This document shows, in pieces, positions 15,427-64,000 of a DNA stretch of 64,000 nucleotides. The translations under genes and the position numbers were made by a program. Source of the DNA: Thalia democratica (lineage: Eukaryota); the NCBI GenBank assembly GCA_965202585.1, contig OZ241830.1, forward strand, positions 19,282,001-19,346,000, given 5' to 3'. The notes under the pieces are model-generated. The model saw nothing but the letters and a program-made list of their open reading frames with translations, was not told the DNA's origin and searched no databases. Position 1 is the stretch's first letter, and every line of letters starts with the position of its first letter.

Positions 15427-16900
15427 CTATACGAAGCATGCAGACTAAATTCTCCCATAACCACTGGAACTCACATTCCTTATTATTTTCCAAACAACTC
15501 CGTCTTCTACTAACTGTTCACTTTCATCAAACTTAAAAGCCCTGACTTTGGTGCAAATGCCATTAAGATTAAAACTACATGAGCCTACCACGCGCACTTT
15601 ACCGTCCTTGCAAGTAGCAAACACTCCCCTGTCGCTTCTGTTAGGTGAACAGAAGGGCAGAATGTTCTCGTCAAAGTAAAACAAGCCGTGCTTCATATCG
15701 AACACGAGCACACGTCTCTGCTTTGGTGGTCCCTTTCCCTGCAGGCGGTTTTGATGAAAAGATTTTCGTGATTTCCGCTGTAAAACAACTTTTCGAACTT
15801 GCGCACTTCGACTTCTTCCAGCCTCTGGTAGTACTAAACGAACCTCACGTTTTCAGCGCCCAGCTTTCGGTTTTTCAAAATGCGAAATTTTCTGCTGCAA
15901 ATTACCAGCAAATGAAAGCTGTGATATCTCGACCACTTTTCTGGCGTGTGGTAGAATAGAATACGTAAAGTTTGCCGTCGCAACAATGCGATAATAGTTA
16001 TTTGGTATTGTACAAATGTTACTAATAGCTTAATTTGCTCAAGATAGGTTTTTTGCTAAAACCAGTTGTTTGGAGTAATCTAGATATTTTGAAATTTTTG
16101 GCTTTGCAAACTTCCAAGCATTTCGTATTCTCTTTTCTACACAGCGACGACAAACATAAAGTAAAATTTTTGTACCCGTTCTCGACTTGGTTTTAAAGAT
16201 ACAGGTTTTCAGTGTCCGTGCTAATCAACGACTTGTTGTCATCTGTTTGGTCTGTACCGTCAATCACATGCTTGTACACATTTCCCGACAAAAGATCGCA
16301 TTGAAACACAAACAAACAGTTTCCACAGAAGCCAACGAACACAGCATACTGTCAAAGTAATGTAGTTTTTAATCAAACTAAACTTTTTAACCACGTGGGC
16401 TGATTCGGAACGCTTAGGTTTGTTTGTCAAGCACCATGTCTCTTCTCTGTTTTGTTGCATAAAGTACAAGCCTGAAAACGACATATTGCCGGTTTCTTTA
16501 AACATCAAAGCTCTCTTTTCTTATTTTCCAAACAAGCGACCACGATTTGAAATTAAGTCCAACTGTGACTGCAAAGTGTTTCGATTTAGATTGAGAGTAG
16601 GTCGAGACAGAACTGTTGCAGACTATCAATTTGTAAAAACTTTGCAAGGTGGTATGCTTCAAATATCGAGATAATATAAAAAGTGATACTGCCACTGGTA
16701 ATGATTTTACGTTATCGAAAGTTTTTTCGTTTTCAAGAATTTAAAAACCGTTCAAGTCAGACTTGTGGTCTTTGTAATGTTTTTAAGACATTGTTCGGAA
16801 ATAAGCAGATTTATCAAGCAGCTTTTGCTCATCAACTTTTAATACCAGTTCATCATTACGACAAAAACAACAATATTTTCATTTTGATGAATATTAAATT
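15427..16900 (-). pseudogene. BTB-domain pseudogene, paralog of 52330-53796
   Basis: Collinear homology over the whole CDS and into the 3' UTR; multiple frameshifts and stops (e.g. TTG to TAG at 15445-47); pieces appear as ORFs 15445-15711, 16260-16508, 16498-16695. Confidence 0.88.
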
Positions 16901-19900
16901 AATCTTAAATATCAAGCTGTTTGATAAAATATGTATAGGTTTAATCGTGTGTATGATATTTAAAATCTGCAACTTTTAGTCTATTTTTAATACCATATAA
17001 AAAGGCTTAAATAAAAAACATCAAAGTTTGAAACAAGTTTCACAACAGTTAAAAAAAAATTATAACTTTTTTTTATAAAGCATTTAATTGTAGTTTTTAG
17101 CTAATAGACTGTTATAAGTTTTCTGAGGATGGATTATAAATCTGAAAACGTTTTAAACTTATGTAATATGCAATAAAGTTTGTAGACTTTTCAAAACTAT
17201 CTTTTAGTTTTTTCTAATTATTAATTAAGAAGAAAAATTACAAAAAATATTTACTGGGTCCTAGACTGATTTAAGCATTTTTATATAAATATTGTCTATT
17301 ACACAATAGAATAAAAAAAAAATTTCAAATCATTTTTCACTAGACCCACTTAAAAACGCTTTTATTTAGTTTTAAAAAATGTAAAATTCAAAAACCTGTA
17401 AATATGTTTTTTACAGTTTTTTTTTCACAATCACCAGCTATGCTATTTGAACAATTCAGAAACATTCTAAAAGTAAATGAAGCAAAAATCTAGCCTTAGC
17501 TACATCAAACTAGTCTGAGTCAGCCTGAGTTAATGATATTAATTTAATTAGAGCAAAAATATGAAAAAGTACTGCTTATCAAGCTTGAATATCAAAAACT
17601 ACTAGTACAATAACAAAACAACTACAAAACGAATAAATGTTAATTAAAAAAAAAACAACAACAACAACAAAAAACATTAAAACTATAGAAACTAGCATTA
17701 AGACACAAAAAAATACCAAAACTTTGATAACTCTAGAGAAAAAAATAAAACAAACTTGTGGCAGCCTTATTTTCTAAAAAAGTTAAAACTATCCGGAGTT
17801 TTCTAAAATTTTAAACTAGCTTGAGATATATTGAGTAGCCAGAGTTTAAGGTAACTTTACTATATTAACATTGAATAAAACTTATGTTAACGAAAAGCAA
17901 AATCAGATTTTAATCTTTTATACCCATCAATAAAGTTGAAAACTTTGTTTGTTATATATCAAGTCGAGTTATAAAGATTAAACATGAAAATATATTTAGG
18001 ATTCACCAAGCTAAGATGTATCAAATAAAGTTTACAGTTTTATTTTTCATAATTCAGATAAGATACCTATATTAATAATTTAGTTTAATAATCATAAAAT
18101 AAAAAGAATTAACCAAACATACTTTAGCTAGTAAATTAATTGCAGTTATAATTCACTTTTGTAGAAAACCAACTTTCATGTAAATTAGTATATTAAAATC
18201 ATTGTTTTAAATTTTGAAAAAAAAAAACTTCTTTGCTGTTATTATATACAATGTAAAAATATATCCTTGCATTATGGAGCTAACATGTGGAATGAAAACT
18301 TTTAACTTAACATACTAAAAATAAAGAACTATCAAAAATTAGTAATAAACTTGTCTTCATAATAGAAAAATATGCTCAATGATATGTAAACCAATTACTT
18401 AATTAAATAGTTCCAGTCAAAACAGTCAAGCTAATCATTATAACGAGAACAAATAAAAAATCAATAAAAATTAACATTAACAAACTAAGCAAAGTTCTAA
18501 ATTTCTTACCACTTAAAGATGTATTTTATAAAAATTTATCACTAAGAAAACCAAAGTTCTTAAAAAGATTTTAAGATTGAACTTACTAAAACTTGTAAAA
18601 TAAACTCAATTAAAATACTAGAAATGAGAGCCTTCACATTTTTTAGCTAAACTGAGTTAATTAACAAACACAAAGTAATATTCTGAAATATATATATACA
18701 AATTTATGTAGAAATATTAGCTTAATGCTACTTGATGCTTCTCAAAAAATTAATTTTTTACATTTTAACTTTAATTTACGGTTTTTAGAATAAATAAAAT
18801 GGTTAATCACTTCATCTTTAAATGATAGAAACTCTTGTGTAATTTTTAATTACAAGAAAGAACAGCTAAATATTGGACATTTTTTAAGTAAAGTTGTACT
18901 TATAGTTGAAAAACAATACTTAATCAAAAGTTATTTACACTAAGTAACAATTTATAGTTGTAACTAAGAGCATCTTAGTAAAAAGTTTCCAAAAAAATAA
19001 TGCTACTTTAAAACTTTTACCTATTATCACGTCAACATTAAAATTTTATTTGAAATCTATTTCAGCTAGGCAAAAACGATCAGTTTTGTTACGGAAACTT
19101 ATAATATTTTAGTGTTATAAATTCAACATTCATTATTCAAAGTTTACCAAATAACCAAAACAAAGTCAATAAACAACGTTTTTAGTGATGTTCTAAGAAA
19201 ATTTTTTCAGTTTTTCTTTTTTTTTTCAGGGGGTCTACAGGAAACATGAAACCAGTCAAAACACGTCCCTGCTTGTAAATAAAATAAATAATTATAGATC
19301 TTTCCACTCGGCAATATAATTTTTTTATAAGAATGGTCTTGTTTTTGCTTATAGTCACTTAAAATGATTAAGGCAACTAAAAATAGAAAACTTAACAACA
19401 GTTTACTTTAAGTTTACTTTAAAGTTAATTAAAAGTGTTAAAAAGATTGTTATTGGACTATTGGCTTATAAGCAAGACGTTGTAAAAAATACATATGAAA
19501 ATCTAATACTTAATCTGTTCTAACAATAAAAACAAACTTTAGTTTTATTTTAATAACATGAAAAACTAGCTTTATAGATAAAGTATAGTAGTTTAATTAA
19601 CATTGACTTAATAATCACAAAATAGAAAAATAATTATAAATATTTTTAGGCTACTTTAAAACTTTGACAAAAAATATTGATAACGTTTAAACATAAAATT
19701 TGTAAAATATTAAATTTATAAAAAGTATTTATTTTTTTAATAAAGAAGTTATTATTTCATAACTATAAAATACACAGCATATGATATTGTAACTCTTATA
19801 CGATTTTTATTGGCCAAAGTTAACTTTATGATTTAACGATCAGTTTTGTACTTATACAGCTTATAAAACTTTATTTATTGTATAATCAATCATTTATTTA

Positions 19901-26600: not shown

Positions 26601-29600
26601 AAAGGGATTCAAAGCAAACCCGGAAACTGGAAAATGTGAAAATATTGACGATTGTAGTAACAACCCTTGCGGAAAAGATGCCGAATGCAAAGACACTGCT
26701 GGGTCTTTCATGTGCGAATGTAAGAACGGGAAAGTTCTCGATGATACTGGTCTGAACTGTGAAGGTCAGTTTGTTTGCTGGTCTAAGTAGTTAGGAATAA
26801 GAATATTTTTTCTATTTATTAGGATACCATAAAAATAGTTCTTATTTATCTATTAGATGCTAAAAGTTTTTTGATGTCTAATTTTGTCTTTCATAATTTA
26901 TTTTTAGAATATAACTATATTTCGAATTAAATGAAACGATCTTATGTACATAAAGTTTTTTTTGTTATAAAGAAGTAAAAATAAGCCAAAAAAAATCATT
27001 AAAACAATAACGAAACTTTATTAAAATAACCAAAACTAAGTTGACAGCAAGTTTTTTCTATGCACTTGGTCCTTAGACAACAGTTTTTAAACGTTCTGTT
27101 TTTTGTGCTCAAAAAACTTAAATTTTAACGAAATAATTCGTAATCACCATTTTGATATAAGTGTTAAAAATATTTACCACAGATAGAATCATTCATTTAT
27201 AACATTATAAAAGTAAAAATTAATTTAATAAAAATTTTTAGAACATGCATTGTGTATCACAGCGTTTTTAAACTTTTTTTTTTTGAATTTTTTTTAATAA
27301 TTTTATTAGTATTTTGTGACTTTTTAAAATACTATTGACAACATTTTTTTTGTTTTTGAATAAGAAAAACCAAAATGTTTTAACGTTTAGTTTTATGCAT
27401 TACAATATTTGGGTTAATTTAAATCGTTCTGGTTTTGGCTAATATAATTTCTAAAATTTTTTTTTTGCTACAATCTCTGTAAAAAGTACTTCTAAATTAT
27501 GTTTAACTTTTACTACTTTTTTTTTACTTGAAAACTATCTTTTAAACTGCAGAACCATCCAATTGTAAGGACATACTAGATGCTAATCCAGGCAAAAATT
27601 TACCTTCGGAACCTTATAAAATTTTTATTGGTGGAAAAGAAGTAACAGCTTACTGTGATATGAAAACTGATGGTGGTGGATGGACTGTTAGTTTGTTTTT
27701 TATCAATTATTTAATGATGAAGTTGTTAAAACTTAAAAAAAAGTGTGTAATGTGATTTCCAAAAAGTAATTGGACTATCTTAATGTAATAAACTACTATT
27801 TTTTTGTAAAACATTATTAAATACGGTTTAATAACCACATTTTTTTATTTACATTTGATCAACACTTTAGGTTATTCAGCGGCGAATAAGTAAATCTGAT
27901 TTTTCGAAGTACTGGAATGATTATGCAATGGGGTTTGGAGATAAAAGCACTAATCATTGGCTTGGTAATTAAATCATTTGCCTTAAATTATGTCATTAAA
28001 TTTGTCATTTATTATTAAAACGTCTATGCTATTTTAGTAACTTTTGGACATTCTCATCATACACTTTAACAATACTTTTTATAAAATACATAGTGACATG
28101 ATTACAAAACTTAACAAGTAGTTATTTAAGATGTTTCCAATAAACTTGAATTTTAAACAATGTTTCTGATTCTTGAAATACTACATTATGCGCTCACTTT
28201 CTTTTATTTCTTATACAATGAAATATCTAATCGAAGTTTATCAAACAATCAACTGTAACTTAGTTTAAGATGTGTTAGGCAGTTTGAAAGGAAGTTGTAA
28301 TTTATAAGCAAAATATTAAACTACAATGCTGTTAAATTATTTGCATTAGGTCTAGAATACGTTAGTGCACTAACTCATATGTTCGATGCTGAATTTCGTG
28401 TAGATTTTACAACTGTGGATGATGAATCAGCATACGCTTATTACAGGTTAAATGTTGCTTTTTGTCACAAATTTTTATCTTGTTGATAAAGCTTTCACCA
28501 ACAACTATAATCAATACAAATGTTTCAGCCATTTCAAAGTTGCAGACGCTGCAGACAAATACCGACTGAGTGTTTCCGGATACAAAGGCACAAAAGGTGA
28601 GTTGGTTTGTCATGAATAATTATTTTAAAAAATTAGTTAGTGTTTTTATGCAATAAGCAGTAAACTCACAGACACAAGTGGTTCAGTTTCTGTATAGTAG
28701 CTTAAATCTAAAGGACTTATAGTTAAAAGCCGCTTTTCTTGATTGTTAGGCTTACTTTTTGGAGACATATTCATCATAACTTATTAGTGTAAAAAGTATT
28801 TTCAATGACAAGTTTATTAAAAAACAAAAATTAGGATTAATATAACGAACCACTGATAATAGTTTACAAATAAAGAGTTTGATACAGCAAGTTTATCAAT
28901 AAAAAATGTTATTAAAACAGATAAAGTTGCACAAATTAATAATATTCAAAAATAGTTACTTCCATTCCAAATAAAATGAAAACAACACTATTAATAAAAT
29001 CTAATTGCTCACCTGATGCAAGGCCGTACTCTAAGGCAGTGGTCGACAAGGTGTACACTGGTGCACACTAGTGTACACGAAACTTTTTTTGGGGTGCACG
29101 AAAGTCATTTAGGGGTGCACAAAATTTTGAGATTACAAAAAAAAATACATAGATTTAGATTAAGTAGGTAGTTAATATTTAATAAAGTATTTAAAGAATA
29201 CTGAACTGGGGATTTTGTTGTAATTGCAGAGAAGTTTTCAATTAATAAGTATGTTATATAAAGCCATATAACTAAAATATCATTGTGAAAATAAGATAAA
29301 ACAAATAAAGCAGTCAATTTAAAAGAGGATCAAGAAAAAAGTTTCAGCTTCAGTTGTTAAATGGTTTGCATGTAAATACAAACTGAGTTATGACTTTTAA
29401 GGAGAAATGCACTAATAAAAGTGTTTACGTAGTCCCACCACTAGAGGCGCTTAAAAAATTAGATCTTGGGGTGCACCGATTTTATTTTTTGCAGCTTGGT
29501 GTACACAGAATCTTATTAGCTTGACGACCACTGCTCTAAGGAATGCAAATCTAGTGAAGGAATCACTGCAGTGTCATCAAAAAACTGTTTATAACTAACT

Positions 29601-30227
29601 GACTTTAACTATGAAAGCCAACTATTTTTATACCAAATTTAGGTAGCAACCGAGTATCATAAATAAAATTAAATTTTCAATTTTATATTTTTTTTATAAA
29701 AGCTTTATTTTGAATAAAAGTAAACACTGCTTTACAAACCAGGGACTATTCGCGATTTCAAATACAACAATAAAAAACACAAGTAAAATTACAAAAAAAA
29801 TTGGCATAAAATTCATAACAAACTTATAGGAAATTTAAACTTAAAAAAAACATAACTTTTTACAAACAACTACTTAAAACAGTTTTAGAATTTTTAAATT
29901 TTTAATTGTGAACACGAATGTGCAGGCGACGCGTTTGGCAGCGAAGACGGTGACACAAAACAACTCGCTGTTGCCAACGGCATGCAGTTTAGCACGCGTG
30001 ACCAGGACAACGACAGTGTCAAGACCCACCATTGCTCGCAGAAATTTGGCAACAGCGGCAACTGGTACAACAGATGTTTCAAGCAGAACCTGAACGGGCC
30101 TTACGACCCCAAGCTCTGCATGTTCAGTTGGAACAGCTTCCAAACTTCCACCAAATGCAAGGACATCTTTGGAAACGACAGATCGCCGCTCAAGGAATCG
30201 AAGATGATGATCAGGCCTAAGAATTGA
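23628..30227 (+). CDS. FReD receptor copy B: type II TM, 2 EGF exons, FReD (predicted 394 aa, 8 exons)
   Basis: Exons 23628-23769, 24688-24864, 26594-26764, 27553-27686, 27871-27964, 28350-28446, 28529-28596, 29926-30227; GT-AG, phases match, 1185 nt open. N-terminus MSDYYDYSSYYKKGGGGGKRKAVNGGIIVILLLIGGGVAAYLVLGSK. The exon 1 donor is the least certain junction. Confidence 0.88.
29037..29533. mobile_element. 497-bp hAT MITE in the last intron of copy B
   Basis: TIR cagtggtcgacaag / cttgacgaccactg; perfect TSD ctctaagg. Confidence 0.9.
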
Positions 30228-30247
30228 GATGGAGCGCGCTTAAAAGT

Positions 30248-30253
30248 AATAAA
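30248..30253 (+). terminator. Poly(A) signal AATAAA of copy B
   Basis: 20 nt after the stop; conserved context atgacgtgatacgtttt. Confidence 0.55.
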
Positions 30254-31556
30254 ATGACGTGATACGTTTTGTCGTGCTACTAATTTTTAAGTTAAACTAG
30301 TATTTGTGGCTTAAATTACAACATATTTTATCATACACTGTTAATTACATACTTAACTAAAAGCTTAATGCTGCGGATTTCATTTATAAAAAAAGTATTA
30401 GGAAATACATTAAACTTAAAAAAACTACATTATAAAATTATTTACTACTAATAAAAAAGACGCTGTACGTTATTCATGATACTTGTTTTAAAGGAAAGTT
30501 TTATTCTAAGACTTTTAATGTTTAAAGGTTTTTTATATTGTTTTTCAAAGTGAAGCAGTAGTTAGAATAAAAACGTTATTATTTTGTTACAAAGTTGTTA
30601 ACTATATTAAAATTAAAACTTATAACTACCTATAAAATTTTTATTAAGTAACTTCTCAACATTTCACCTTTTAGTTGCTGCTTGTTGTAAAAAGTCTTGC
30701 CTATTGATTTTTACTTAATACTAATAGTTTATTGATAGTGCTTGCGCAGCCATGTTTTTCTAAAAAGCCTAGGGAAATTTAATTTCAATTCTTCTCGTTT
30801 ATAGTTTTATCTTGAACAATGTTGATTCTATCTAAACAGTATGCTTATTATAACTGCAGATCTTATCAGTCGTGAATGAGTTAATTTAGGCAAAAGTCAG
30901 CGGTTTGAGCCTTTTTATAAATTTCTTGCTCGAATTACTTAAACTATTACTTTTTTCTTATTTTATCTCAAGTTTGAGAAGTTCATTTGTAATTTTTTAA
31001 GACAAAATACTGAACATTATTTAAAGTAACGTTATCAACTCTATTCTAAATAGCTTTTTTTAAGAGCTAAATAAAGCATTGTAGGTTTATTAAATCAAAG
31101 CAAAAAATTATAAAAACTAAGGAAAAAAACTCAAACTAAAATAGTGTTTAGAAATCTGCTTTGTTATAACCCAGATTTTAGTTTTAAAAGTTATATATAC
31201 ATATATTTATCTAAACTACGTTTGCTACACATAACAAAATACAGAAATAATAAGTAGCGTGACAATTCGAATTTGGAGAACTTAAACTTCTATAACTTAA
31301 ATTCTAAATAAAGTTAATGGGCAACAAATTAAAAAGCACTATATATTTGCAAAAAAAATTAAAGATGAACTTTGGAATTTACTATTAAATATTTTAATTT
31401 AAAACTTGATTTATCAATATTTCCAAAAATATCTAAATGTTTGAAAAGAAAAAAAAAGTTTGTTGGTATCAATTAAACCTACATATAAATTTTTATTCAT
31501 TTTCATATATACTAATTTTTGATTTGTGTCGCTTAAATTTTTTTTAACGTTTTAGT

Positions 31557-31870
31557 TTGTACGAATTTGAATACTCCAACTTATACCCGCGAAGGTTTGC
31601 ATATTCAAAATTTGGTCGGCAGCCACTGAATGCCAATCCCTGCTTTGTAATTAAACAACACTTCGCTGTTACAATTGTTCTTGGTAAAAACTATCTAAAT
31701 ATTACCAAAGAAGAAACTGAAGTGATAATGAAAGCCAGATCAGTTTTGTTTTATCAAGATAAATTATAGAATAGTTATAATAGCGTTTATATTAACTTTG
31801 GTAAAGCTATGTAACCTTTCTATGGTGCCGATACTTATGATGTTAACTCGATCAAACCCCAAGCGTAAAG
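31557..31870 (+). mobile_element. Small degraded RT fragment, probably the same Penelope-like family as 63280-63985
   Basis: NLYP and NITKEETEVIMKARSVLFYQDKLW resemble the segment that precedes the MGSY motif in these RTs. Confidence 0.45.
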
Positions 31871-32097
31871 TCAAACACTATTAGTTGCAGGTTGACTTCA
31901 CAGCAGATGCTATCGCATAAAAGCAATGATACAAATATGTGGTTATTACCTAGAAGGTTAAAACAAGATGTAGTAAAAGTTTTTTTAACATTTTCAACAT
32001 CGTAGGTTTTCGTTTACTAAAAAAAAGAATTATCCCTAAACTTTTCAACTAACAGCTTCCAAATATATTCAAAACCCAACACCAACATAATCTACAT

Positions 32098-32330
32098 CAG
32101 GGCTTGCCAAACTTTTTTCAAAAGGTCCAAAGAAATTAAAAAAGCTATGCCCCCCTTCAGGAAGATTAGTCAAAAAACAAACATAAAAAACACCTAAGAC
32201 CTTTTTTGCTCTTCATCATCAACTCAAGAACATCTAGTGTAAGTTTCAAACTATGAACTCATGGCCCCTTTGCTGCTCATGGCCCCCTAAATTTCTGTGA
32301 TGGCATCAAAGGGCTTTCAAACTCCCAAAC
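32098..32330. mobile_element. Degenerate copy of the MITE family of 62868-63123
   Basis: cagggcttgccaaactttttt..., ttttttgctcttcatc, atggcccc shared with 62868-63123; more remnants at about 42320-42690. Confidence 0.6.
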
Positions 32331-32652
32331 CACCATCTATAGGCCGTCTCAGTGGTGTTGATGAATTTTCGTTTCATCTAAATTTTGCCTTTTAAAAAGT
32401 TTTTGTTTTGTTATCTAGTTTAAAACTTGAAGATTAAAGGGCTTGTGAAGTCTTTTCTTAACATTTCCAGCGCGCTAAAGTTTAATAATCAGATCCGCTA
32501 ACAAAGAATCTGCTGACCTCTTAGTTTCCTAAAATGCATTCAAAATCATACTACATTAAGTATATGCCAGGAGTATTCCTTAAGCACAACAGGTCTCAAC
32601 AAAACTAATTTCGGAGACAAAGTTAATATTAAATTTGTTTAATTACACAAAG

Positions 32653-32690
32653 GCAACGACGTTTCTCCCCTAAGGGATCTTCAGGCCTGC
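32653..32690 (-). ncRNA. Minimal hammerhead ribozyme core (Penelope pLTR type)
   Basis: Minus strand gcaggc-CTGAAGA-tccc ttag ggga-GAAAC-GTC-gttgc: both catalytic boxes, 4-bp helix II, palindromic ACGT helix III, GUC triplet; helix I imperfect. Confidence 0.7.
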
Positions 32691-33940
32691 AAAATAAAAA
32701 AAATAAGACGACCGATAACTATACAAGTATATTATAATTCAAGACATTACAATCAAATGAGAATTAAATTAAAAATCATGATATCAATATAGTACTGTTA
32801 CTAAATAATTAAAGTAACAAAAGTAAAAAACAAAAACAAGAATAAGAACAATAAATTTTAAATACCACTTTTACTTACAATAGTTGATATGATTTATACA
32901 GATTCAGATTAAGCTTATAACAACACGAAACAAAATGGCACTTAACAGTACTCTTCCTCTTTAACTCGCTAAAACTACCCTAAAAACCTTGTGATCAAAA
33001 AACAAGTTTAGTACTTTTCAATCCAGCCTACAACATATTCAACACTAGCTAAATGTTAATGAAAAGCAATTTTAGTTTAAGGTTTTTAATATTGCTTGAA
33101 ACTAAACTGAAAACAAAAAGAAAACATTCACCAACACTAATAAACATGCAGTAAAAAAAAAGAAAATAAAGAACCGTGGAGTTTACATCTAATGCTTTAT
33201 AATTCAAAAGAAATAAAAAAAAATAAAAATGTAAAAAAGACCTTTATAAAACTCACATGTTAGAAATCAAACAGTTTAATTTATATTGTCATTAATTTGA
33301 ATTAAAAAATCAGTATAAAAGTTGCATAGAAGTCAATGTTAAAACCAAAATTTTAAACAATAGTACCAATGAAAATGTAATAAATTAAATGCGAAATCTT
33401 TTAAAAATAAAATATTTTAAAGGTTATGAAAATGAGTTTAGGAAACCTAGATGTAGTTACTAAACCAAGTTAGTTTTCGTAGACTTTGACAAATAATGTT
33501 GTTCTGATTGAGCATATAAACCTACTATTTACATTTATTGATATGAATATAAAATTATTTGAATTTATATTCTTAGTTACAATTAGACTATAGAGTTTAA
33601 AAGTAGTTAAAACAATACATATGTTAATAAAGTGTAAACCGTTGAAGCATATTCCTTTGGTCTACTTTTACATTTTTTTATTTAAGAAATACATGTTAAG
33701 AATTAAAAAAAACTAAGCCGTCTCCTTTCTTTGATGTACTTTCAAAAACGACGTTAAATACAATTTGTTTTTATCGAATTTAAACTTTTTTAAATCATAC
33801 CGAAATAATTAATCAACACCAACAAATCTTACAGCAGTAAATTATGAAAACCTTAGAACCGTTTTATTTATCTTCGTGTAAATTTTAGAAATTTTTAAAA
33901 AAATAAACCTTTTGTTTTCAAATATTTTGAAATTTCATTA

Positions 33941-33947
33941 TGACGTA
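33941..33947 (+). promoter_or_regulatory. CRE/ATF-like TGACGTA upstream of copy C
   Basis: Positionally conserved in all three paralogs. Confidence 0.4.
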
Positions 33948-34015
33948 GTCGATTACCATTTTACATTTTTCAACTAAAACAAAGTTTAAAATTAAAAAAA
34001 GTTTGACTTGTTCAA

Positions 34016-37000
34016 ATGTCGGACTACGATTCTGACTATTCGTCGGACGATGAAGACGATGGCGGGGGTAAAAGAAAAGCTGTGATTGGGGGAGTTGTTT
34101 TAGTCCTTCTTCTCATTGGAGGAGGAGGAGCAGCCGCCGCGGCCGTCATCGCAGGAAACAAAGGTGACGCTGGAACTGGTGGAACAAGAGCTGGTAAGAC
34201 GAAACTCGTACTTTAGCTTTTAAGCTATAAAAGTTAAATGAAAATTGAAACGCAGAGTAAAGCAGTGCTACCAACTAAAACCATTTGGTTCTAGATGCTG
34301 TATGTACCTATTGTAGGAATTTCAATGTGAGTAGTGTTACTTTTTAGTAAGGAGGGACAAAATACATCACAAATCCGCGGCAGTTTTTTGTATGTTGATT
34401 ATACAGTTGAAAAAAAATTAATAAAATTCAAATTTATAATGAAACAATTGCTTAAGGTGCAATATTACTAAGTAGTGAAAAAAAACGCATACTTTAAAAT
34501 AGTTCCTTTAAAAAATACTCAGTTCTGTTTGTTTTTGTCATGTTGTTTTTCAACTAAAAGTATGCGGGCAAGAGATGTCTGCTAGGCAGGCCGTACATTG
34601 CCCAACTTTAGTTACATGGCAATTTAAATTTGGACAATTCAAATTCCGACAATTCAAATTCCGACAATTCAATAAATTAGTTCTAAAGAGCCAAAATTAA
34701 AAAACAAACATATTTGAAAAAAAACGCATGTTTAGGTCTGATTAATACCTACAATCACTTTTTTCTAGAAAACTTATTTACCAAAAATGCTTATTTTTTT
34801 GTAAATATTTAAAAATGTTTGAAGTTTTTCGAAAAAATTTTTTTTGTAAGTATTTCAAATGGACCTACTTAGGCATTTTTAATTTTTTTAATATACATTA
34901 CTTTTTGAGTTGTCGCCTTTTAAAATAAAAACTAAGAACTTGAATTGTCCGAATTTGAATAGTCGTGCACCCCAACATTACTGTTTAACCATTTACTAAT
35001 ACATAAAAAAACTATTAGTGAAATTAGTTCATATTTTGGTTAAAAAACTGCGGAACAACTAAAATACCTTAACAGAAATTTTTTAATTATGTATTTCTAA
35101 AGAATTAAAGGAACTATATTATCTTTATATTAAAATATTAACTAGTGCAAATAAGTACTTATCCTTAAATTTCTTTTGCCGTATGAATAAGGAGAATACG
35201 ACTTAATCAATAGAAATTTGATTTATTTTTTATTTTAATAATAGAAGTAACTTGTCTAATTAAAGTACAAAAGTTTTGTTAGAATATTCATAAATATCCA
35301 TAAATTTGATTTGATATAGTTTTTTCTTGAGAAATTAAACAATTAAAATATGTTAAATTAGTATATACACTGTTAATTGCTTACTTTTTTTTTATAATAC
35401 CTTCAATAACGAACCTTTTCTTGCTAGAAATTACTTTTGGCAACTTAAAACTGCGTTTCAAATCTTATAAGAAGCCGGTGAAAATTTTTTATGTAAAGGT
35501 TACTAACTTATTGCTTAAATATTTTTGTTTGCTGATTATTTTTATACTAATGAGCTAAAAGAGTTTAATTAAAACTTTTTTTATAACGTAATTGAATTAT
35601 ACAAAAACTATTTAAATACACGCTTTAATCAGATCTTGTGTGCGAAACGGGATTCACAGCAAACTCAGAAGCTAGCGAATGTGAAAATATCGACGAGTGT
35701 AGTAACAACCCTTGCGGAAAAGATGCCGAATGCAAAGACACTGTTGGATCTTTCATGTGCGTATGTAAGGGCGAAAAAGTTCTAGATGATACTGGTCTGA
35801 ACTGTAAAGGTCAGTTTATTTAATGATCTAAGTAATTAGGGTTAGAATTCTGTTTTGTTTAATTAGTTTTTAACGAATATATTTTGTAAAATGGTGTTTT
35901 TAGTTATTTCATTCATAACTTTATTTCTAGAACATAACTATACTGACTAATTTTTTTTTGATCCAAGGTCCTTAGACAACTTTTTTTGAAATTTCTGTTT
36001 TCGTGCTCAATAAACTGAAACTTTACGAAATAAATCTAAAAAAAAATTGATTTAAGTGTCGAAATAGTTACCAATGTTAGAGTGTGGCATAAGCCAGGGG
36101 TCTGCAAAGTCAAGCCCTCGGCCGAATTCTGCGCTAAAAATAAAAATATGCGGCCTGTGAGGTACTTTTTAGCTTTAAATATACCTATAACGAAACGGTA
36201 ATAAATTTTTTGGTGAAAAAAGAAATATTAGGCTCTTAGTTTAACATTTACTAATTACCAGTGGTACTATTTTGCTTACATTACAATTTTTTTCGGTTTA
36301 ACGTAGTAATAAGATATTGATTACTACATTTATTTAAAAATAACTGCAACCCGCGAAGACTTTTATCTATTCAGTGCGGTCGGCAAACATTTTTCAAGAA
36401 AAATTGGCCAGCGATTTATGAAAAAAATACCAAATCCTAGTTTAAGCCCCAGTTTTATATTTTTAGGATATATATTTTTAAGTAACAAATAGAATTGTTT
36501 AAACGTTTAGTTTAAAGTACTAAAGTTAATGGGTTTAAACTAATTGACTTCGTTTTTAGCTAACTTAATTATTAAAGTCTGTATTTTATGTAAAAATCTC
36601 TGTAAAAAGTACTTTTAAATTATGTTTAACTTTTACTACTTTTTTTACTTGAAAAATATCTTTTAAACTACAGAACCAACCAATTGTAAGGACATACTAG
36701 ATGCTGATCCAGGCAAAAATTTTCCTTCGGAACCTTATAAAAATTTTATTGGTGGAAAAGAAGTAACAGCTTATTGTGATATGAAAACTGATGGTGGTGG
36801 ATGGACTGTTAGCTTGTTTTTAATCAAATTTGATTTGTTAAATTGTTAAAACTAAAACGAAAAAATGTTACTTGTGATTAATAAGTTTATCTCTACAAAG
36901 ATAGTTAAACATAAAGCAAAAACTTTCCAAAGTGTAAAATAACAGTTTAAAAATAAAGCCTATAATGACCATGTTTGTTAATGCTGATGTTTGATCAATG

Positions 37001-39476
37001 TTTCAGGTTTTTCAACGGCGTATAAGTAATTCTGATTTTGCGAAATACTGGAATGATTTTGCAATGGGATTTGGAGATAAAAACACTAATCATTGGCTTG
37101 GTAATAAAATTATTTGCTTTAGATTATGTCATGCATTTTAACATTATTTTATTAATACTTTTATATAACTTTAGCAGTTGTTATACATTACCCATTTTAC
37201 ACTTTTGCGTTTCTTTTATTATAGAATACGAGCTTTTGTGTCTGTATAATACTATGACTGCGAAGCCTAATAAATGATTACGTAAGCGGTTTTTGAAGAA
37301 TATGAACCTTAAACAAAGCTTTGTTTGTTTATTCTTAAAATACAAATATTTATGCTTAGTTTCTTTTATTATTGTTTTAAATGGCTATAAACACAGCGAC
37401 CCTTGAGATTTCAGCTAATATTTTTTTTTGGCAAATATCACAAAAACACTATTGCAAAATGTTTGACGATTCTAAAGAACTTTCACTTTGGCCCCATTCG
37501 CTATTTTGAAAACCAACCCAAGTTTTTAGGGACCTAATAAATGCGAACTTGGAGTTTTTAGCTGGAAATGTTTACATGTCACAACTATTAGAAAACAAAT
37601 TGGTTACAATTTAAAACGATTTAATAAAACTTTTAAAAAGGTACTTCTTAATATTTTGGAAAAGATTGTAAATTCAAGGAAACTTACAAAAAGTGATAAA
37701 AAATTACATAAAATCAAGAAGAGCCTTCATAAAACTTTGTTTAAATCGTCTTAAATTTGGAACAACATGTATTTGTGATAATTGCCACATGTAAAAAAAT
37801 CCAGCTAAAATTTTTTTAGTAAAAAAATTGGGGTCCCTTACAGTTTTAATTGGGATGGTTATTAAAAATCGATTGCTGTAAAGTTAAAAGTTTCTTCAAA
37901 GCATCTATAATTTTGTACAGAGTGTTTTTGTGATTCTTGTAAAATAATCTAATGTGAAAAAAAAAGTTTTGCTAAAAACTTAAGGGTCGCCGTATGTATA
38001 AGTACTCTATTATAGTTTGTTATTATTTGTAATTCAAATTAAAATTAGTTGAACAAGTGCCCTATTGTACATGTTTCATTAAACTTTTACAAACCAACAA
38101 CTATAAACTCATTGAAGATATTTTAGGCATTTACAAAAGCAAGTTGTACTTGATCATCAGTAATATTTATTTAAATTTGATAAATAAAATGTATTAGGTC
38201 TAGACCACCTTAGCGCACTAACTCATATGTTCGATGCTGAATTTCGTGTAGATGTGACAACTGTAGACGATAAATCAGCATACGCTTATTACAGGTAAAA
38301 TTTTAATATTTGACAATTCTTTTAGATTTTTTATTAAGAATTTCACTAAAAACGATAAAAAATGCAAATGTTTTAGCCATTTCAAAGTTGCAGACGCCTC
38401 AGACAAATACCGACTGAGTTGTTCTGGATACAAAGGCACTGCAGGTGAGTTGGTTTGTCATGCTAACTTAATTTTTTTTTTAAATACAATATACGGGTAG
38501 CTGTCAAATTTGCACGAGGAGACAAAAATGCATAAAAGATGTTTTTGCATAAAGGGTATTTTTTGCACGAAGAAACTTTTTCACGAGCAGAAAATTATAC
38601 ACAGAGAAACTTTTGCAAAAGTTTTTTTTTTTTTGTAATTTTTTTTATTTTAGTATAACTTTTACACCTAGCCGTTTCCCTCGGTCGGTAGATTTTTTTT
38701 TAATAATAATTTTTATTAGTTATTTTATATTTTTAAAATTTTACTATTACTGTTACCCCTAACCCTTACCCTCAGTAAGTAACTTATTTCTTCATTGTTG
38801 TTAAAAATTGTCTTTTAGTTTATTTTTTTAATTTTTTACTCTCGTGCTAAAATGTAACTCATGCAAAACTGACCCTTGGTGCAAAATCGTCTTCGTGCAA
38901 TTTTGTTCTCTCGTGTAATTTTGTGCAATCGTGCAAACTTGGCTTCGGGCATTTTTAAGCATTCGTGCAATTTAGTCTTTGTGCAATTTATACCCGTTTC
39001 CACAACATACAGCTAAAAACTTAAGTTTAGTTATAAAAGAACTAAACTTTTCAAAAAATTCATAACAAAAATAAAGGGTTTCTAAACTTAAAACAGTGCT
39101 TTTACAAAACTTCTACTCGAAGCAGTTGTCAGTTTCAGCAACTTTTGCTCTTTTAAAAAGCTGACTTTAAAAACGCGCAGGCGACGCGATGGGAAAAGAC
39201 GCGGACGAATCTAGCACCGCCCACGGCATGCAGTTTTCCACCAGGGACCAGGACAACGACGTGCATGCAACCAGCCACTGCTCGAGGTACTTCCACAACA
39301 GCGGCAACTGGCACAACCAGTGCTTCCGGCAGAACCTCAACGGGCAGTACCGGGCGGACGCCCACTGCTCGTTCACTTGGAACACGTTCAAGACCGAGAC
39401 GAGGTGCAAGGGGAAGAGCGGGAACAGCAGGTCGCAGCTCAAGGGGTCGAAGATGATGATCAGACCGAAGAGTTGA
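34016..39476 (+). CDS. FReD receptor copy C: type II TM, 1 EGF exon, FReD (predicted 347 aa, 7 exons)
   Basis: Exons 34016-34193, 35633-35809, 36674-36807, 37007-37100, 38198-38294, 38377-38444, 39181-39476; GT-AG, phases match, 1044 nt open. Confidence 0.9.
34607..34970. mobile_element. MITE-like insertion in intron 1 of copy C
   Basis: Imperfect inverted ends (aatttggacaattc / gaattgtccgaattt), 15-bp repeats caattcaaattccga, flanked by cccaac on both sides; homologous intron segments of A (about 11200) and B (about 25930) lack it. Confidence 0.6.
36095..36439. mobile_element. Older hAT MITE copy (family of 23152-23452)
   Basis: Starts caggggtctgcaaa; internal gcggcc motifs; degenerate TSD gcataagc / gtttaagc. 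Confidence 0.65.
38493..38997. mobile_element. TIR element with subterminal tgcacga/tcgtgca repeats in the last intron of copy C
   Basis: Ends acgggta / tacccgt; ttgcacga repeats on the left and tcgtgcaa on the right; related fragments at about 42845-42925 and 62025-62090; no clear TSD. Confidence 0.6.
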
Positions 39477-39489
39477 GATGAGGACATGT

Positions 39490-39495
39490 AATAAA
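39490..39495 (+). terminator. Poly(A) signal AATAAA of copy C
   Basis: 13 nt after the stop; conserved context ctgacgttatatgtttt. Confidence 0.55.
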
Positions 39496-41984
39496 CTGAC
39501 GTTATATGTTTTAAAGTTTAAACTAGTGTTGGTTAAGTTATGAAGTGTTGTATCTCAAGCTTTTGTTAAGGTGTTCAACTGTTTAGCAAATTTAATTTAG
39601 TTTGAATCTTTGTGAGTAAAAAAGTATTAAATATAAGTCATATTGAAAAAAAAGCTTAATCTTTGTTACAATGTTGTACTACAACAGTTTACAAAGACTG
39701 TAAAATAGGCTGTGAGCCATTTTAATAGCCTTAAATAATATTATTTGATTTTGAACAACACTTACTTTTTTCTAGAAAAAAATTGTAGGTAACAAACGTT
39801 ACATACTTACAAAAGTTTAAAGCTCGGTTATAACAAAGCGAAACTCTACAAAATTTTTGTTTTTGTTTATTACCTACAATTCTACTGGATAAGATTTCGT
39901 TGTGTTTTCTTATATCACTTTATAAGTAATAACATTTTCTTAATAAAAATTCTATACTACCTTAATCAAACATAAGTTGTTTTTTCAAATATATATTGAA
40001 GTTTAAACAAACAAACGTTTTCGTAGCAAGATAACATTTTAGCCACTCTGTTAATAAGTAAATAAACATTATTCTTATTACTTCATAGAATTAAGTTGGT
40101 CTACATTTCTAAGTTTTGCTGATATCAATTTTAGTTATTCGATAAAACCTAAAAAATATTTTGTACTGAAAGTTGCGACTCTTTTGTTAAGTTTAGTTTT
40201 AATAATATTTAATATTATGTCTCAAAAACTTACAAAATAAATTCTCAAACTATAGAGAAAATAAGAGAAAATTTTTACATAGTATAATTCGATTGAGTAA
40301 TTTATAAAAAAAATTTGAGTAATTTTTTTTTTGTCTAAATGAGATTTTTCGGCTAGACAAGTAGCCAGTAATTTGACGTCAGACATACAACAACAAGATT
40401 TAATTACTTACAATTGAATTGTTTAGCTATACGTATCTTATATACTATTTAATCTGCATTGGGAATTAGTGAACACTTTTATAATAATATAGTAGCGCTA
40501 TGTCTGATTCAATTGTTTCATATTTTGTACATTTAATAATAAAGTTTAAAAAAAGACTATTTTTTTGTTTTTAATTTAACTAGAATTTAATGAAACGTAT
40601 ACTATCATTTTAGCTTTTAAGTCAAAGTAGAAACTAAATAGCTATTATACGTATGCGATAAATTTGCGAGTAATCTTGTTGTTGTTGTAGTTAAATTAGT
40701 ATTACTTAACTACTCAACTAATTAAAATATTTAAAGCTTATCTAATTTACGTAAGCAGACTAAAGTTTTATACTTACAGTTAATAAGCTAGCAACACTAC
40801 GGATCTAGTTTAAAACTTATCGAATAAAGTTGTATACTAATTTCAATACTCTCTCTATTAATCACTGAGCTAAAAGAATATATTAAGTTTAAGAGTACCA
40901 TAAATAGCACATAATCTGTTTTTAGCGTTTAGTGTCTAATTAAACATTTGGTAACCAAGTTCTAGTGGCTCTAGTATAATAAAAAAATATCTATATATCA
41001 CACCTATAGTTGCTAATTACTTTAATAATTAGAACTTTCACAAAATAAGGTTTTAAGCTTATAGAACAGTTTTACATATCATAATATTATTTAGAATAGC
41101 TTAAAGTTTCAAAGAATTACTTTATTTTGTTTATGTATCAGTTTCTTTTTATGATTTAAGTATGTTCTTATTCGTTTATTGAATTCTATATCTTGTTCAT
41201 TTATAATTTTTTTACTATTAATTTTGGTTTAGCTTCTGTTGTGCTGATTTATTTTTGTGTTTTATCAGTTTGTAAAAAAAAAACATTTATTTTACTTTTT
41301 TGTAAACTAGGGTTTTCAAAGATTTCCATTTTCCATGTTGTTTATTTTAGTTTATAGTGTTTATTGTTATCAGAAACTTATTATTATTTAAAATTGTACT
41401 TAAGAGAAAAACAAGGACACAAGTAAATGCATGTAATGGTTTTCATCAAACTTCTACCAATTTTTACCAAAGTAAAAATTTTAAGAAAAAAAAAACTATC
41501 ATGGACAAAAAGCTAAAATCTACTGAAATAAAAAACAGTCTTATAAAAAATTAGTTTTTAAATAGTCACGTGAATTTTTTCATTTTTTCTAGCAACATAA
41601 AAATATACTACTAGCTTATTACAACTTTTTAAACTATGCTTTTCAGTTAATAAATCTAAAATAATTTTTTACTGTTTTTAGTTTGTATAATTTTTAATTA
41701 TCTATATATTTGTAGTAGTTTTTGCAATAAATATATTTATAACCTTAGCTTTGTTGATAAACTTTGTGTTATAGATACAATATGTTTAAAGTATTGGAAT
41801 ACGTATGATCTATCACAAAACAAATACAAAATTTATTGTTTTTTCCTTAAAATTAAAAAGGTAGTTAATTAATTATTAAAACTATGTTATTTACAACTTA
41901 TCTTTGGCGAAAAAGTTAATTTAAACTGTGTAATAGTGAATTCGGTATAAGCTGTCAGGAAATATATGTATTCATTATGGGAGT

Positions 41985-42238
41985 CGATCATTTCTAACCC
42001 GCTATCATTTCTAACCCGTTCACTTCTAACCCGATCACTTCTAACCCGATCACTTCTAACCCGATCACTTTTAACCCGATCATTTCTAACCCGATCACTT
42101 CTAACCCGATCACTTCTAACCCGATTATTTCTAACAATATCATTTCTAACCCGATCATATCTAACCCGTTTTAACCCAATCATTTCTAACCCGATCATTT
42201 TTAACCCGATCGCTTTTAAACCAATCGTTTCTAACCCA
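41985..42238. repeat. 15-bp minisatellite (ttctaacccgatcac)n, about 17 units
   Basis: Directly visible; produces the repetitive ORFs 41887-42198 and 41966-42382. Confidence 0.95.
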
Positions 42239-45200
42239 TTCTACTTGTTTATTTTATTTTTTTTTTTTAATCTGGACTTCATGCAAAAACAAACTAGTCT
42301 TAATAAAGTTTTATATACGCCTAAGACTTTTTTTTTGCTCTTCAGCGTCAATTTCCAGTATAAGTTACAAATTTTGGATTAATAGCTGCTTATTGCCCAA
42401 GTAAGCCCTGGTCTAGTATAAGTTGCAAAACTACACTTAAAACGCTTTAGATCTTTTTTTTTTTAATTTTTAGCTCTTAACCATCAACTCCAGAATATCT
42501 AGTATATGTTTTAATACTACTCTAAAATACGCCTAAACCTTTTTTTGCTACTCATCGTCAACTACAGAACACTTGTGTAAATTTCATATTATTGCCTCAT
42601 GGCCCCTGTAGCCACTTAACTACTCACGCCTCTCCCCCATTTCAGCTTATAGGGCCTTAAATTTCTGTAACGGCTTACTGTGGGAAACTTTTATCGAATA
42701 TTAAAAAAAATAACTAAATAAAAATAGAATAAGTTAAATACATCACACAAAGAGACTAAATTCAGTAATTTTTTACACTTCTGTTTTGAAAGTTTTGAAA
42801 TTTTGATATTTGAAAGTACTAAAACCAAAAACTTTATTTTAAGGTCAGCTGTCATATTTGCACGAGCGTACAAAACTGCACGAGGGCACAAAAATGCACG
42901 AAGATACATTTGCACGAGGGGAAAATTTCACTTTCTTTACCAAAAATTATATTAAGGAAATAGTATCAAGTTTTCAATCCATACAAAATTTTATTTTTGT
43001 GAAGCTGTTGCCAGCCACCTTAATTATTCTAAATTTTTATGTATAAATGGATATAAGTTAATTTATGTTGTATTAAATTAATAAGAAAGTCTAAATTAAA
43101 GTTTGTGTTCTTAACATCTTGCTACTTGCTTATTATTTTAAGAGGTACAGTACATTATAAACAAAAAAAACGCTAAAATGCTTATTTTATTTTCTTCTGT
43201 TGTTTTCTTACTACAAGTATTATCTATCAAATAAAATTGTAAACTTATAACGTCATAATTTTCAAAGGTAGGCTTTACATTATGATACACATATGAACTT
43301 ATTGGAATTAATTATTGTTTAAAGAATACTTTTTTATCTATAGTTTTTTTTTGATTTATTTATTTGTAATTGAAAATTTTAGATAGTTTAGTATTTTAGC
43401 AAACTTAAAATTTTAGTCATTGTTGGTGATTTCTTAGGTTTATAAAACTTTTTATAAGAAAATTGTTATTTTATAGTTGTTAGTTAAAATTAAGTGAAAG
43501 ATTAGATAGCAGTTGTTTGATCAAACTGTTGACTCATTTCTGAAAGTAATTTTTAACTATTATTTGTTTACCTGTTTATTTCAATACTTTTGTTCCTTTA
43601 CATGGTTTGTAGAAATGTGAAGTTTACTTTTTACAGAAAAGTATAAAAAAAAAAAGATTTCTCCTTAAGTTTTTCAAAACATACAAGTGTTTCGTTAAGA
43701 GTAAAAATTTGCTTGTAAAATATAATTGTATAAGTACTTATATAATAAAATAAATGTTTGATTAGAAAAACACAAAGTTTAAAGGGTTCTAATGGTTTTG
43801 GAAAGCTTTAATATTTATAAAACAGTGAGCAATTTTGGTAATCGGCAAGCAAGATATAATAAAAAAATATTTTTACGGACCAACCTTATTTCGAAAAATC
43901 GTCGCGTTGTTTAAAAAATTTACACTGTGAAAATTGAAAACATATTTATGAGAAAAATTGTATTACATTGATATTTAATAATCACTACTGGGTACTAAAA
44001 ACTAAATTGAAAACTAGTATAGTACATACTTCTTTTGATTGAAAATTAAACTTGCTGGTTTAGCAAAAATTTACTTTTAGAATAAATTTAGTCGTGCGCC
44101 AGTTATGGCTCTTCTAAACGTAGGTTTGCTGCAAGTAGTATAATAAAAAATATTAACTTAGGCAAACTAGCCTTTTTTTTAATTTAAAATTATGTGAAAC
44201 AAAACTTTTGAGTTGAAAGATTTAATACAATATAACAACTAATACAGAATTAATAGTTTAAAAAAAGTATCATAACTTTTAAACAAAATAATAGTATATT
44301 TTATATTAGACAGACACTTAGGTGGTGAAAAACTTTTAATAAAAAATAATAACAGTTTATTATTTACAGACATATTTGTTTTAAGTTTCTATTCATGCAA
44401 ATTAACATTTTGATATCAAAAATACATATAAAAAAGAGAAAACAATTGAACTTATTAAAAGTAAACATAAGGTGACCTAACTTATAGTATATTTATTTTG
44501 AGAAAAAGTTTTTAAAATAGCAAGATTATTATTAATAAAATAAAGCTTAGAGTAACAACGTTTATTTGAATAATCAATAAAAATTATATATATTTGACAT
44601 TAATTGAAATTGTTCCTGCATTTTATTAGATTATGCGTTACAAAAAAGAAAAACTCAATAAGTACTTTTAATAAATTTAATTATATAATGTTTTTTCAAT
44701 TAGAGAAATTAAGTACTTTTTAACTAAAAATTAGCACAAACAAATAAGTTGATTATAAATTAAGTGTATGATAACAATACTAACTATACTAACTTGTTTT
44801 AAAGTACACTGGTACGAATTATTATTGTTAATAAATAGAACTTCAAAATTTATGAACTATTTATAAAGTTCATAAATAGCAACAAAAATTTAAAATAAAT
44901 GACACATTGACTTTTTCCTGCCCTCACAGTTTTATCGAGCTGCTTTCTTTTTTCAAATATTTAGTTAGGTGCTATAGCCCTAGGGCAAATTGGCGTAAAT
45001 TTTTACCACTAGTAGGACAACCGCTATTGTGAAACTAAACGTGAGCTAAAATTTTGATAAGTTCAAAGGATCTAACGAGAGTCTTAACATTTTCACACGA
45101 AAAAGTCCATTTAACTTGAGATCTTGAAATTTAGTTTTATAACAACCTGCAGTAACAAAAAGTTGTTGGCTTAATAAACTTATGCTTTTATGTTTTAATA

Positions 45201-45782
45201 TGTTTTAGTTTATGCTGTAGTTATAGCTAATTTTCGAGCATTAAGAAGTTTTTAGAGTTTTAGTCTAATGAACCAATTAAAGTTTATTTTTGACTTATTT
45301 TTGCCTAGATATACAGAAATATTTAACCTGCAAAGTATTTTTACAAAATAAGAATTTGTATGACAATAAAGATTGTGTTTTTAAGTTAATTAAGAGTTTT
45401 ATCAGTATTTTAGTTTTTTAGTTATTGTCACTACATAATATTTGGTTTAATAAATTAGGTTTTTAATTATATTAAAAATGTGATTTTGGTTTATAATCTA
45501 ATACCTATAAAATCAGACTTTGTAAAATTTTATTTAACCAGGTTTTTTGTTAATGTAATGCTTACCCTTCATTTTAATTTTTGTGAATTTTATAGTTTTT
45601 GTTTGTTTAGTTAACTTTTACAACGTAACAGTAAATTTAATTTTTATTTATATTTTTAGTGTTAGAAATATGTAATTTATTTTAAATAAGCTATCATATT
45701 AATGATACTAATAATAAAAACAATAACAAAGATTTGCTATTTCAGTAATTGATTTATAGTTAATTCATGGATTATTCATAGA

Positions 45783-46024
45783 CTTCGACAACTGACCCCG
45801 GCACTAAAGCCACCCTGCCAAGACGTTTAGTTCGATTGAACAAGCCAACAAATGTCGAAATAAAAGAAGGTGACTATCAGTTTCAAGTGAAGATTTAGGA
45901 TAATAAAATAAAGAAAGGTGAAAGTTGCCCGACCAGCTCTATTTGGTTAAATTGATTCGTCAGAGTTTTTAGATACATTGTATTAAAAGTTTCATCAATG
46001 ACAGAAACCTTTTTAGTTTGAAAG
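45783..46024 (+). pseudogene. Decayed exon of an unknown protein (left palindrome arm)
   Basis: TLPRRLVRLNKPTNVEIKEGDYQFQVKI*DNKIKKGESCPTSS...INDRNLFSLK then aaag|gtatgt; stops and a frameshift. Confidence 0.5.
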
Positions 46025-49000: not shown

Positions 49001-49550
49001 ATCATATACTAAAATGTGTTTTACAATAATATATGTTGTACTTCTTACACTTAATGTAAGTTAATAAAAAAATTTAATGCAATTAATGTAGAAAATTAAA
49101 CTTTAAAAATCTTCATAAAGTTTTGCAAACTTGACGTTAAGCTGCAGTTGATACTACTAAATTTAGATGATGCATTTAAATTTTATGTGCTTAAAAAAAA
49201 CAATGCGACGCCACTGCTTGCAATTACCTTTTTTATATAATTTACATTTACTTAGATAAGTAATATATAGTAAAAAATAAAACACTTTAAAATTATGCAA
49301 AAGTTTTAACCTGACTTGCCTTTCAAATTAAAAAGGTTTCTGTCATTGATGATATGTATAATGCAATTTTTCTCTGAACTCTGACGCATCAAGTTAACTA
49401 AACAAAAGCTGGTCAGGCAATTTTCACGTTTCTTTATTTTATTATCCTTAACCTCCACTTGAAACTGATGGTGACCTTCTTTTTTCTCGATTGGTTAACT
49501 TGTTTAATCCAGCTAAACGTCTCGGCAAGTTGGTTTTAACGCTTTTGGTT
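45790..49550. repeat. Degenerate inverted duplication: arms about 45790-47590 and 47930-49550, spacer about 340 bp
   Basis: Collinear matches: 45810-46035 with rc 49305-49535; 46560-46645 with rc 48750-48840; 46820-46880 with rc 48520-48590; 47310-47585 with rc 47930-48190. Confidence 0.85.
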
Positions 49551-49715: not shown

Positions 49716-49922
49716 TAATCATCAGACTACAAGCTTTGGTTAGACCTAGACCGGTTTCGTCCTTATTACGACTTGTCAGCCACTCACAACTGAAAAACTT
49801 GCAGTCATCAATCTACAAACGGTTTATCATGCTTTTACATGAACCAAGCGTTTGCTTGTAGTTTGCTTGCGGATCATTGAAGTCAGCATTGTCTTTTTCC
49901 CTGCAACGTGGTCGTATGATCG

Positions 49923-63985: not shown

Positions 63986-64000
63986 ACAGTAGACTACCGC

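Follow-up and report, generated by a model that had tools for sequence, protein, structure and literature searches.

A short tract shared by a BTB-Kelch pseudogene and two live paralogs probably arose by interlocus gene conversion

How does a gene copy that has decayed to ~74% overall identity come to match a live paralog almost perfectly over a patch of little more than one hundred nucleotides? The question arises in a 64,000-nt stretch of chromosome 6 (G000:C6:19282001-19346000; GC 27%), hereafter the window, in which a pseudogene (P) lies 38 kb from, and inverted relative to, a live BTB gene (L1). An initial annotation of this DNA had proposed that the patch reflects recent gene conversion between the two copies or from a common donor, and that the pseudogene may serve as a sequence reservoir. 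In our analysis divergence is locally collapsed, synonymous sites included, and the collapse is confined to L1, P and a third copy, L2. Judging from the sequences, the tract probably results from interlocus (non-allelic) gene conversion among these three chromosome-6 BTB-Kelch copies. We infer the mechanism, the number of events and their direction, the last two by parsimony only. Coordinates are collected in Table 1.

Table 1. Location of the genes, tracts and duplication arms (window positions unless a chromosome or contig is named)
Feature	Location	Strand	Description
Live intronless gene L1	52330..53796	+	open frame, 488 aa; N-terminal BTB domain and predicted Kelch-type beta-propeller
Pseudogene P	15427..16903	-	homologous to the whole L1 coding region
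Paralog L2	G000:C6:18944538-18945998	-	intact
High-identity tract in L1	53512..53643	+	encodes aa 395-438, penultimate propeller blade
Same tract in P	15580..15711	-	no indel, no stop
L1-P perfect match, 54 nt	53576..53629	+	equals rc 15647-15594
L1-L2 perfect match, 76 nt	53541..53616	+	core of the proposed L1-L2 exchange
Conserved motif, 37 nt	53600..53636	+	encodes FATCKDGKVHVV; identical in T035
Right arm of large inverted segmental duplication	27372..64000	.	continues to at least G000:C6:19.376 Mb
Left arm, carrying L2	C6:18.8997-18.9743 Mb		partner of right arm
Second, distant BTB-family gene pair	C6:18908897-18910321 / 19367665-19369089		
L003	C542:13538-14983		
L004	C1:41220890-41222335		
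L011	C1:40130370-40131848		
L019	C1:40163910-40165388		
L006	C6:34585066-34586505		
L020	C6:19805962-19807350		

The BTB domain of L1 was detected with Pfam (PF00651, aa 15-105, E = 7.6e-5, 23.3 bits against a cut-off of 20.5) and was the sole domain found there, with no Kelch or BACK match. An AlphaFold model built on 24 family members (pLDDT 82, pTM 0.81) places a helical linker between a BTB domain and an all-beta C-terminal part. Foldseek matched it best to KBTBD4, KBTBD2, KLHL proteins including KLHL22, KLHL15 and KLHL32, and designed Kelch propellers; the all-beta part matched Kelch structures at E = 1e-7 to 1e-11, with a whole-chain TM of only 0.35-0.48. Together, the BTB domain, the confident model and the Kelch-type structural matches suggest that L1 has the architecture of the KLHL/KBTBD BTB-BACK-Kelch CUL3 substrate adaptors in strongly diverged form. 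L1 has in common with these proteins the Pfam BTB domain, the predicted helical linker and a predicted Kelch-type propeller, but it is only 9-13% identical to its structural matches, is without a Pfam Kelch or BACK domain, is intronless and belongs to a lineage-specific family; a CUL3 role is here only putative. The family is likewise intronless and is large: the L1 protein has at least 90 matches in the 802 Mb genome, most of them intact single-exon genes of ~480-510 aa.

P was initially annotated as a pseudogene, and this is borne out by 15 disabling changes in total: the start codon reads ATT instead of ATG, 8 indels shift the frame and 6 in-frame stops interrupt it. Homology to L1 extends ~50 nt into the 3' UTR (to 15381) and ~60 nt 5' of the former start codon, and the indel-to-substitution ratio is typical of neutral decay. 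For most of its existence P has clearly been nonfunctional, and selection on P can therefore neither have kept the tract nor explain why fewer private changes are found in it. A 1-nt frameshifting deletion lies directly at the 5' edge of the tract (P 15714). Around P, Logan unitigs from the likely source sample contain two equal-depth haplotypes ~6-7% apart (at 15050-15286, 15859-16052 and 16625-16861) that are further set apart by small indels, one of them a 9-nt insertion behind 15912, so that this locus is very highly heterozygous. Immediately 5' of the pseudogene, at window 17072-17200, unitig depth rises abruptly to 1,900-7,600, which marks a high-copy repeat. On a contig from a second organism, a BTB-type gene meets this repeat at the gene's 3' end (15557 to 17083), a junction that is not interpretable.

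As first reported, L1 and the reverse complement of P agree at 123 of 132 positions across the tract, with 9 differences, no indel and a 54-nt perfect run. The lower identity described toward the stop was also found (75%, 113 of the 150 nt aligned beyond the tract), and the 5' flank comes close to that value (822/1122, 73%). The best L1-P segment spans 53545-53629 (82/85). L2, the closest relative of L1 (protein identity 69%), lies on the same chromosome at a distance of 390 kb and also carries the tract: the best L1-L2 segment, 53521-53616, matches at 95 of 96 positions, and the 76-nt perfect run is the longest in the 4.5-kb L1/L2 alignment (next longest, 52 nt). Over the 132 nt, whose boundaries were picked after inspecting the data, L1 and L2 agree at 124 positions and L2 and P at 115. 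For L1-P and L1-L2, identity thus rises from 73-81% in the flanks to 93-94% in the tract; for L2-P it rises from 73% to 87%. Conversion should be rare between copies so diverged, the three being only 74-81% identical overall. A genome search with the tract returned three good copies (L1, P and L2) and one match at 71%, ruling out a fourth donor copy in the assembly. An RNA element embedded in this region was likewise ruled out (no Rfam match at E <= 1; fold z-score -1.0). L1 belongs to one arm and L2 to the other arm of a large inverted segmental duplication (each arm at least 67-75 kb, spacer ~335 kb); P is not part of the arm. Homology between the arms stops within continuous sequence at the two inner boundaries, where no N occurs.

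In sliding windows the tract was the single identity outlier for all three pairs within the trio, while identity between L1 and the other paralogs was ordinary there (65-77%). A binomial test of the L1-P tract against the pair's own flank rate gave p = 7e-9, with a range over pairs of 7e-9 to 1e-4. Since the BTB domain is regionally conserved and so mimics tracts, a plain permutation (Sawyer-type) scan was misleading; it returned dozens of 'significant' pairs and was dropped. We instead used a rate-aware scan, in which the match probability of each site is set by its conservation in the other 18 paralogs and by codon position, and the null is simulated. The top segment gene-wide fell within the tract for all three trio pairs: 82/85 matches against 61.7 expected for L1-P (p ~2e-4), 95/96 against 77.2 for L1-L2 (p ~4e-4) and 69/72 against 51.6 for L2-P (p ~4e-4). 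Synonymous differences all but vanish in the best segments, with pS of 0/18.5 inside versus 0.278 outside for L1-L2 and 1/17.5 versus 0.39 for L1-P. Over the whole tract, Nei-Gojobori dS is 0.12 versus 0.35 in the 5' flank for L1-L2 and 0.115 versus 0.57 for L1-P; against other paralogs it is saturated (1.3-2.0), as in the flanks. Within the trio, then, synonymous sites in the tract are not as diverged as those in the flanks (pS 0-0.06 versus 0.28-0.39).

An outside relative served as a control for local rate. T035, the single clade relative found in the protein database, is encoded on a Tara Oceans metagenome contig (L035; ENA ERZ907857, 2709 nt; protein P0001), is 76% identical to L1 at the DNA level and is probably from another species. 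Two metagenome scans for orthologs of L1, L2 or P that could be used for dating found none. The maximum likelihood tree of the flanks is ((L1,L2),T035),P, in which T035 joins (L1,L2) at 99% and P falls outside at 99%. The unrooted tract tree, by contrast, sets L1, L2 and P apart from T035 with 93% support. In AU tests the tract topology fails on the flank data (p = 0.03), but the flank topology is not rejected by the tract alone, 132 nt with little power (p = 0.35). The two ends of the tract behave differently. In its 5' 88 nt, T035 and L1 differ at 19 sites, about the flank rate, as against 2 for L1-L2 and 7 for L1-P (Fisher p = 0.0013 and 0.015). In its 3' 44 nt, T035 and L1 differ at a single site and L1 and L2 at 6. 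With T035 as rate control, the signal over the whole tract is weaker (Fisher p = 0.03 for L1-P and 0.10 for L1-L2).

The 3' end thus has to be set apart. L1 and T035 are identical at 37/37 positions of 53600-53636 (p = 0.013 gene-wide, rate-aware scan), and L1-P identity over these 37 nt is therefore weak evidence for conversion. This part of the tract is a conserved motif, which owes at least some of its identity to conservation; conversion cannot account for its match to T035. The initial view of the tract as one uniform event is consequently not supported, given that the 3' 37 nt are identical in T035 as well and the 5' 88 nt are not. L2 alone carries a cluster of 5 derived changes in the motif, at 53617-53628, and a sixth difference at 53643. 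The cluster amounts to 5 substitutions in 12 nt, 4 of them non-synonymous, turning KDGKV into KHDIL; it could represent a multinucleotide event or a local adaptive change.

Could the entire tract be explained in the same way, with no conversion at all? On this account the tract simply evolves slowly, under a conserved blade motif and preferred codons, and the three copies have kept the ancestral sequence. Besides the motif and the low-powered AU test of the tract, two observations speak for it. Most states private to L2 or P are derived, with L1 keeping the outgroup state, and amino-acid conservation in the tract is about double that elsewhere in the gene, with dN against other paralogs about half that of the flanks (0.18 versus 0.37 against L003). 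We nevertheless consider slow evolution unlikely. Tract synonymous sites are saturated against all other paralogs, and T035 differs at 19/88 sites in the 5' part where trio pairs differ at 2-9/88. Private changes in the long-dead P should spread evenly, yet they make up 6.8% of sites in the tract versus 15-19% in the flanks. L1 and L2 have evolved equally in the 5' flank, with 87 and 88 private sites in a three-way comparison (P, 171), but have 0 and 8 in the tract, where P has 9. The zone lacking any L1-private site covers alignment columns 1251-1400, 146 nt, the next longest being 51 nt. Finally, the rate-aware scan, which already allows for site conservation, still gives p < 0.001.

Gene conversion among the three copies, the reading we prefer, may have proceeded as follows. 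A short heteroduplex would have formed where the copies were still most alike, at the conserved propeller-blade motif, and its repair would have copied ~90-130 nt from one copy into another. L1 agrees with L2 or P at every variable tract site, and two events with L1 as the hub therefore suffice. The older, between L1 and P, would have covered at least 85-132 nt, with 7-9 differences gained since; the younger, between L1 and L2, would have covered ~96-105 nt and has gathered 1-2 differences. The similarity of L2 and P would follow from these two events, so that no third is needed. The proposal of recent L1-P conversion is supported by the dS collapse, the rate-aware scan, the 146-nt zone and the disagreement of flank and tract trees. 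The suggestion of a common donor is answered in part: L1, being without a private change over 146 nt, is the hub, L2 is a third bearer and there is no fourth copy.

As for direction, P would have received sequence from the functional lineage, and L1 and L2 would have exchanged it with each other. The opposite history, in which P donated to L1 and L1 then to L2, is what the reservoir idea implies. It takes two events, as few as the preferred history, and the unrooted tract tree cannot separate donor from acceptor. Moreover, conversion of genes by pseudogenes is known from other systems, such as the chicken immunoglobulin pseudo-V genes and human CYP21A1P, which converts CYP21A2. The present locus is like these in that a dead and a live copy lie close together and share a patch; it differs in that no P-derived states are seen in L1, there is no cassette array and the patch is conserved, not variable. 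Neither L1 nor L2 has any of the 9 states private to P in the tract, of which at least 6 are derived relative to outgroup paralogs and the remaining 3 could be read either way. The shared tract also keeps all the invariant or nearly invariant residues of the family (L396, D399, K401, F405, Y406 and F425). Over the 5' 88 nt, T035 and L1 differ by 10 synonymous and 9 non-synonymous changes (hand count from the alignment; pN/pS ~0.25), and the shared tract has a dN/dS of ~0.2 against T035; with purifying selection of this kind, a neutral, pseudogene phase in the donor's past is hard to accommodate. Derived and private P states, conserved residues and a purifying pattern fit a functional donor better than a decayed one. 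Transfer from live gene to pseudogene is therefore more likely, and a pseudogene donor has, in our estimate, little probability. The reservoir idea finds no support, as no tract site shows a derived state common to L1 and P but absent from L2 and the outgroups.

An assembly artefact, in which the P or L2 tract is a chimera of consensus calling or polishing, or L2 is no separate locus but an uncollapsed L1 haplotype, is the least probable account. The unitig haplotypes at P are ~6-7% apart, close to the ~5% arm-to-arm divergence, and the short Logan unitigs, from two samples, do not reach from the tract into unique flanking sequence. L1, L2 and P nevertheless differ among themselves inside the tract at the private sites given above. 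Reads also carry a P-type variant (15648/15649/15652), with a unitig depth of about one copy, and the L1/L2-type unitig reaches ~2.4-3.2 haploid depths, above two copies of one diallelic locus. Moreover, no N occurs in the window or in sampled stretches of the other arm, homology ends in continuous sequence at the inner boundaries, and reading L2 as a haplotig would leave the L1-P tract unaffected. Unitig depth in the bin containing the tract is raised, as expected for sequence common to several loci.

We also looked at base composition. The tract has 50% GC in both L1 and P, compared with 40% for the whole gene, and ranks in the top 1.1% of 132-nt segments in the window. As noted at the outset, it lies within the GC3-richest part of L1 (66% in the tract; 62-68% over alignment columns 1056-1320). 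However, the GC-biased signature that had been read into this is not borne out by the changes themselves: when polarised, those in P are 4 W-to-S versus 4 S-to-W and those in L2 are 2 versus 4, counts too few to exclude a weak bias. Flank GC* is 0.35-0.43. At the same columns GC3 is 64-66% in the trio versus a family mean of 64% (range 44-86%), and nearly all paralogs have a GC3 peak at columns 1056-1320 (family mean 60-64%). GC richness so predates the conversion event. The events did not produce it: this part of the gene is GC-rich throughout the family, and the GC richness of these exons is a long-standing feature of family and genome alike. More generally, the GC richness of converted regions can be cause or effect of conversion (bioRxiv 10.1101/135152). 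The 64-kb window contains ~30 GC islands, which by their position are probably mostly exons.

Beyond the trio, the rate-aware scan of 249 family pairs yielded 12 pairs at p <= 0.001, versus 0.25 expected by chance. L003 and L004 share with L011 and L019 a 231-nt tract in the BTB region (columns 207-437) with 96% identity versus 67% overall and pS of 0.08 versus 0.60; this is a clearer conversion tract than the focal one. L006 and L020 are identical at 84/86 positions over columns 1165-1274 (pS 0.14 versus 0.45). This second tract overlaps the focal GC3-rich region of the C-terminal blade, which may be a recurrent hot spot. With two clear tracts besides the trio, conversion appears from these alignments to be general in the BTB-Kelch family. 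Short conversion patches of this kind would distort trees, dN/dS and duplication dates across the at least 90 family matches, and the C-terminal blade should be masked or modelled when copies are dated. They can also make a long-dead pseudogene look locally 'fresh' without function. The value of the finding is mainly for annotation and evolutionary analysis of the genome.

The setting of L1 and L2 in an inverted duplication raises a further point. Arm-to-arm identity is a mosaic, with 94-96% in parts, 87-91% elsewhere and only ~80% in the 4.5 kb that surround the BTB gene, where coding and non-coding sequence are equally affected. The second, distant BTB-family pair has ~82% identity over the ~2 kb compared (the last ~320 nt of the gene and downstream sequence), and both BTB blocks are the most diverged among the arm stretches compared, with window 32402-42302, 48288-50842 and 55266-58483 left out. 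It is conceivable, though we think it rather doubtful, that BTB-Kelch genes are 'islands of divergence' in a duplication otherwise held at ~95% identity by arm-to-arm exchange, and that only the penultimate blade still exchanges, drawing in the nearby P. If this were true, selection or mismatch-driven suppression of recombination would hold these putative substrate-recognition genes apart against homogenisation, and conversion would strike the GC-rich C-terminal blade repeatedly, as a hot spot; columns 1165-1368 contain two of the three clear family tracts. GC-biased gene conversion has been described in the arms of palindromes and inverted repeats, for example X-chromosome palindromes (PMC8981503). 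L1 and L2 resemble such cases in lying in inverted-duplication arms that are ~95% identical elsewhere, as expected under arm exchange. In contrast to palindromes, the arms here fall well short of 99% identity, similarity is lowest in the BTB block (~80%) and no GC bias is measurable in the changes.

Conversion at this locus is otherwise an ordinary case of a known process and calls for no new mechanism. Interlocus gene conversion (IGC, or NAGC) between paralogs in segmental duplications is well documented (Dumont & Eichler 2013, PMC3790853; Dumont 2015, PMC4467073), and the tract has its usual features: a short, near-identical stretch in diverged same-chromosome paralogs, synonymous sites included, with sharp edges and in a GC-richer part. 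Its length, ~100-130 nt, is in keeping with published tracts, whose mean is ~250 bp, and its GC contrast, 50% versus 40% for the gene, with the published 48.9% in converted versus 39.6% in matched unconverted regions (Harpak et al. 2017, bioRxiv 10.1101/135152). What sets it apart is that the copies, at 74-81% identity, are far more diverged than the human duplications studied, that three copies are involved with one as hub, that no W-to-S bias is shown and that the host is a non-model marine animal. Finally, a second marine metagenome relative, L036 (ERZ17174903), is intact and has 85% DNA identity to paralog L007. Together with L035 it shows that intact relatives are present in marine metagenome assemblies; these are useful outgroups and hint that the family is found in related pelagic animals.
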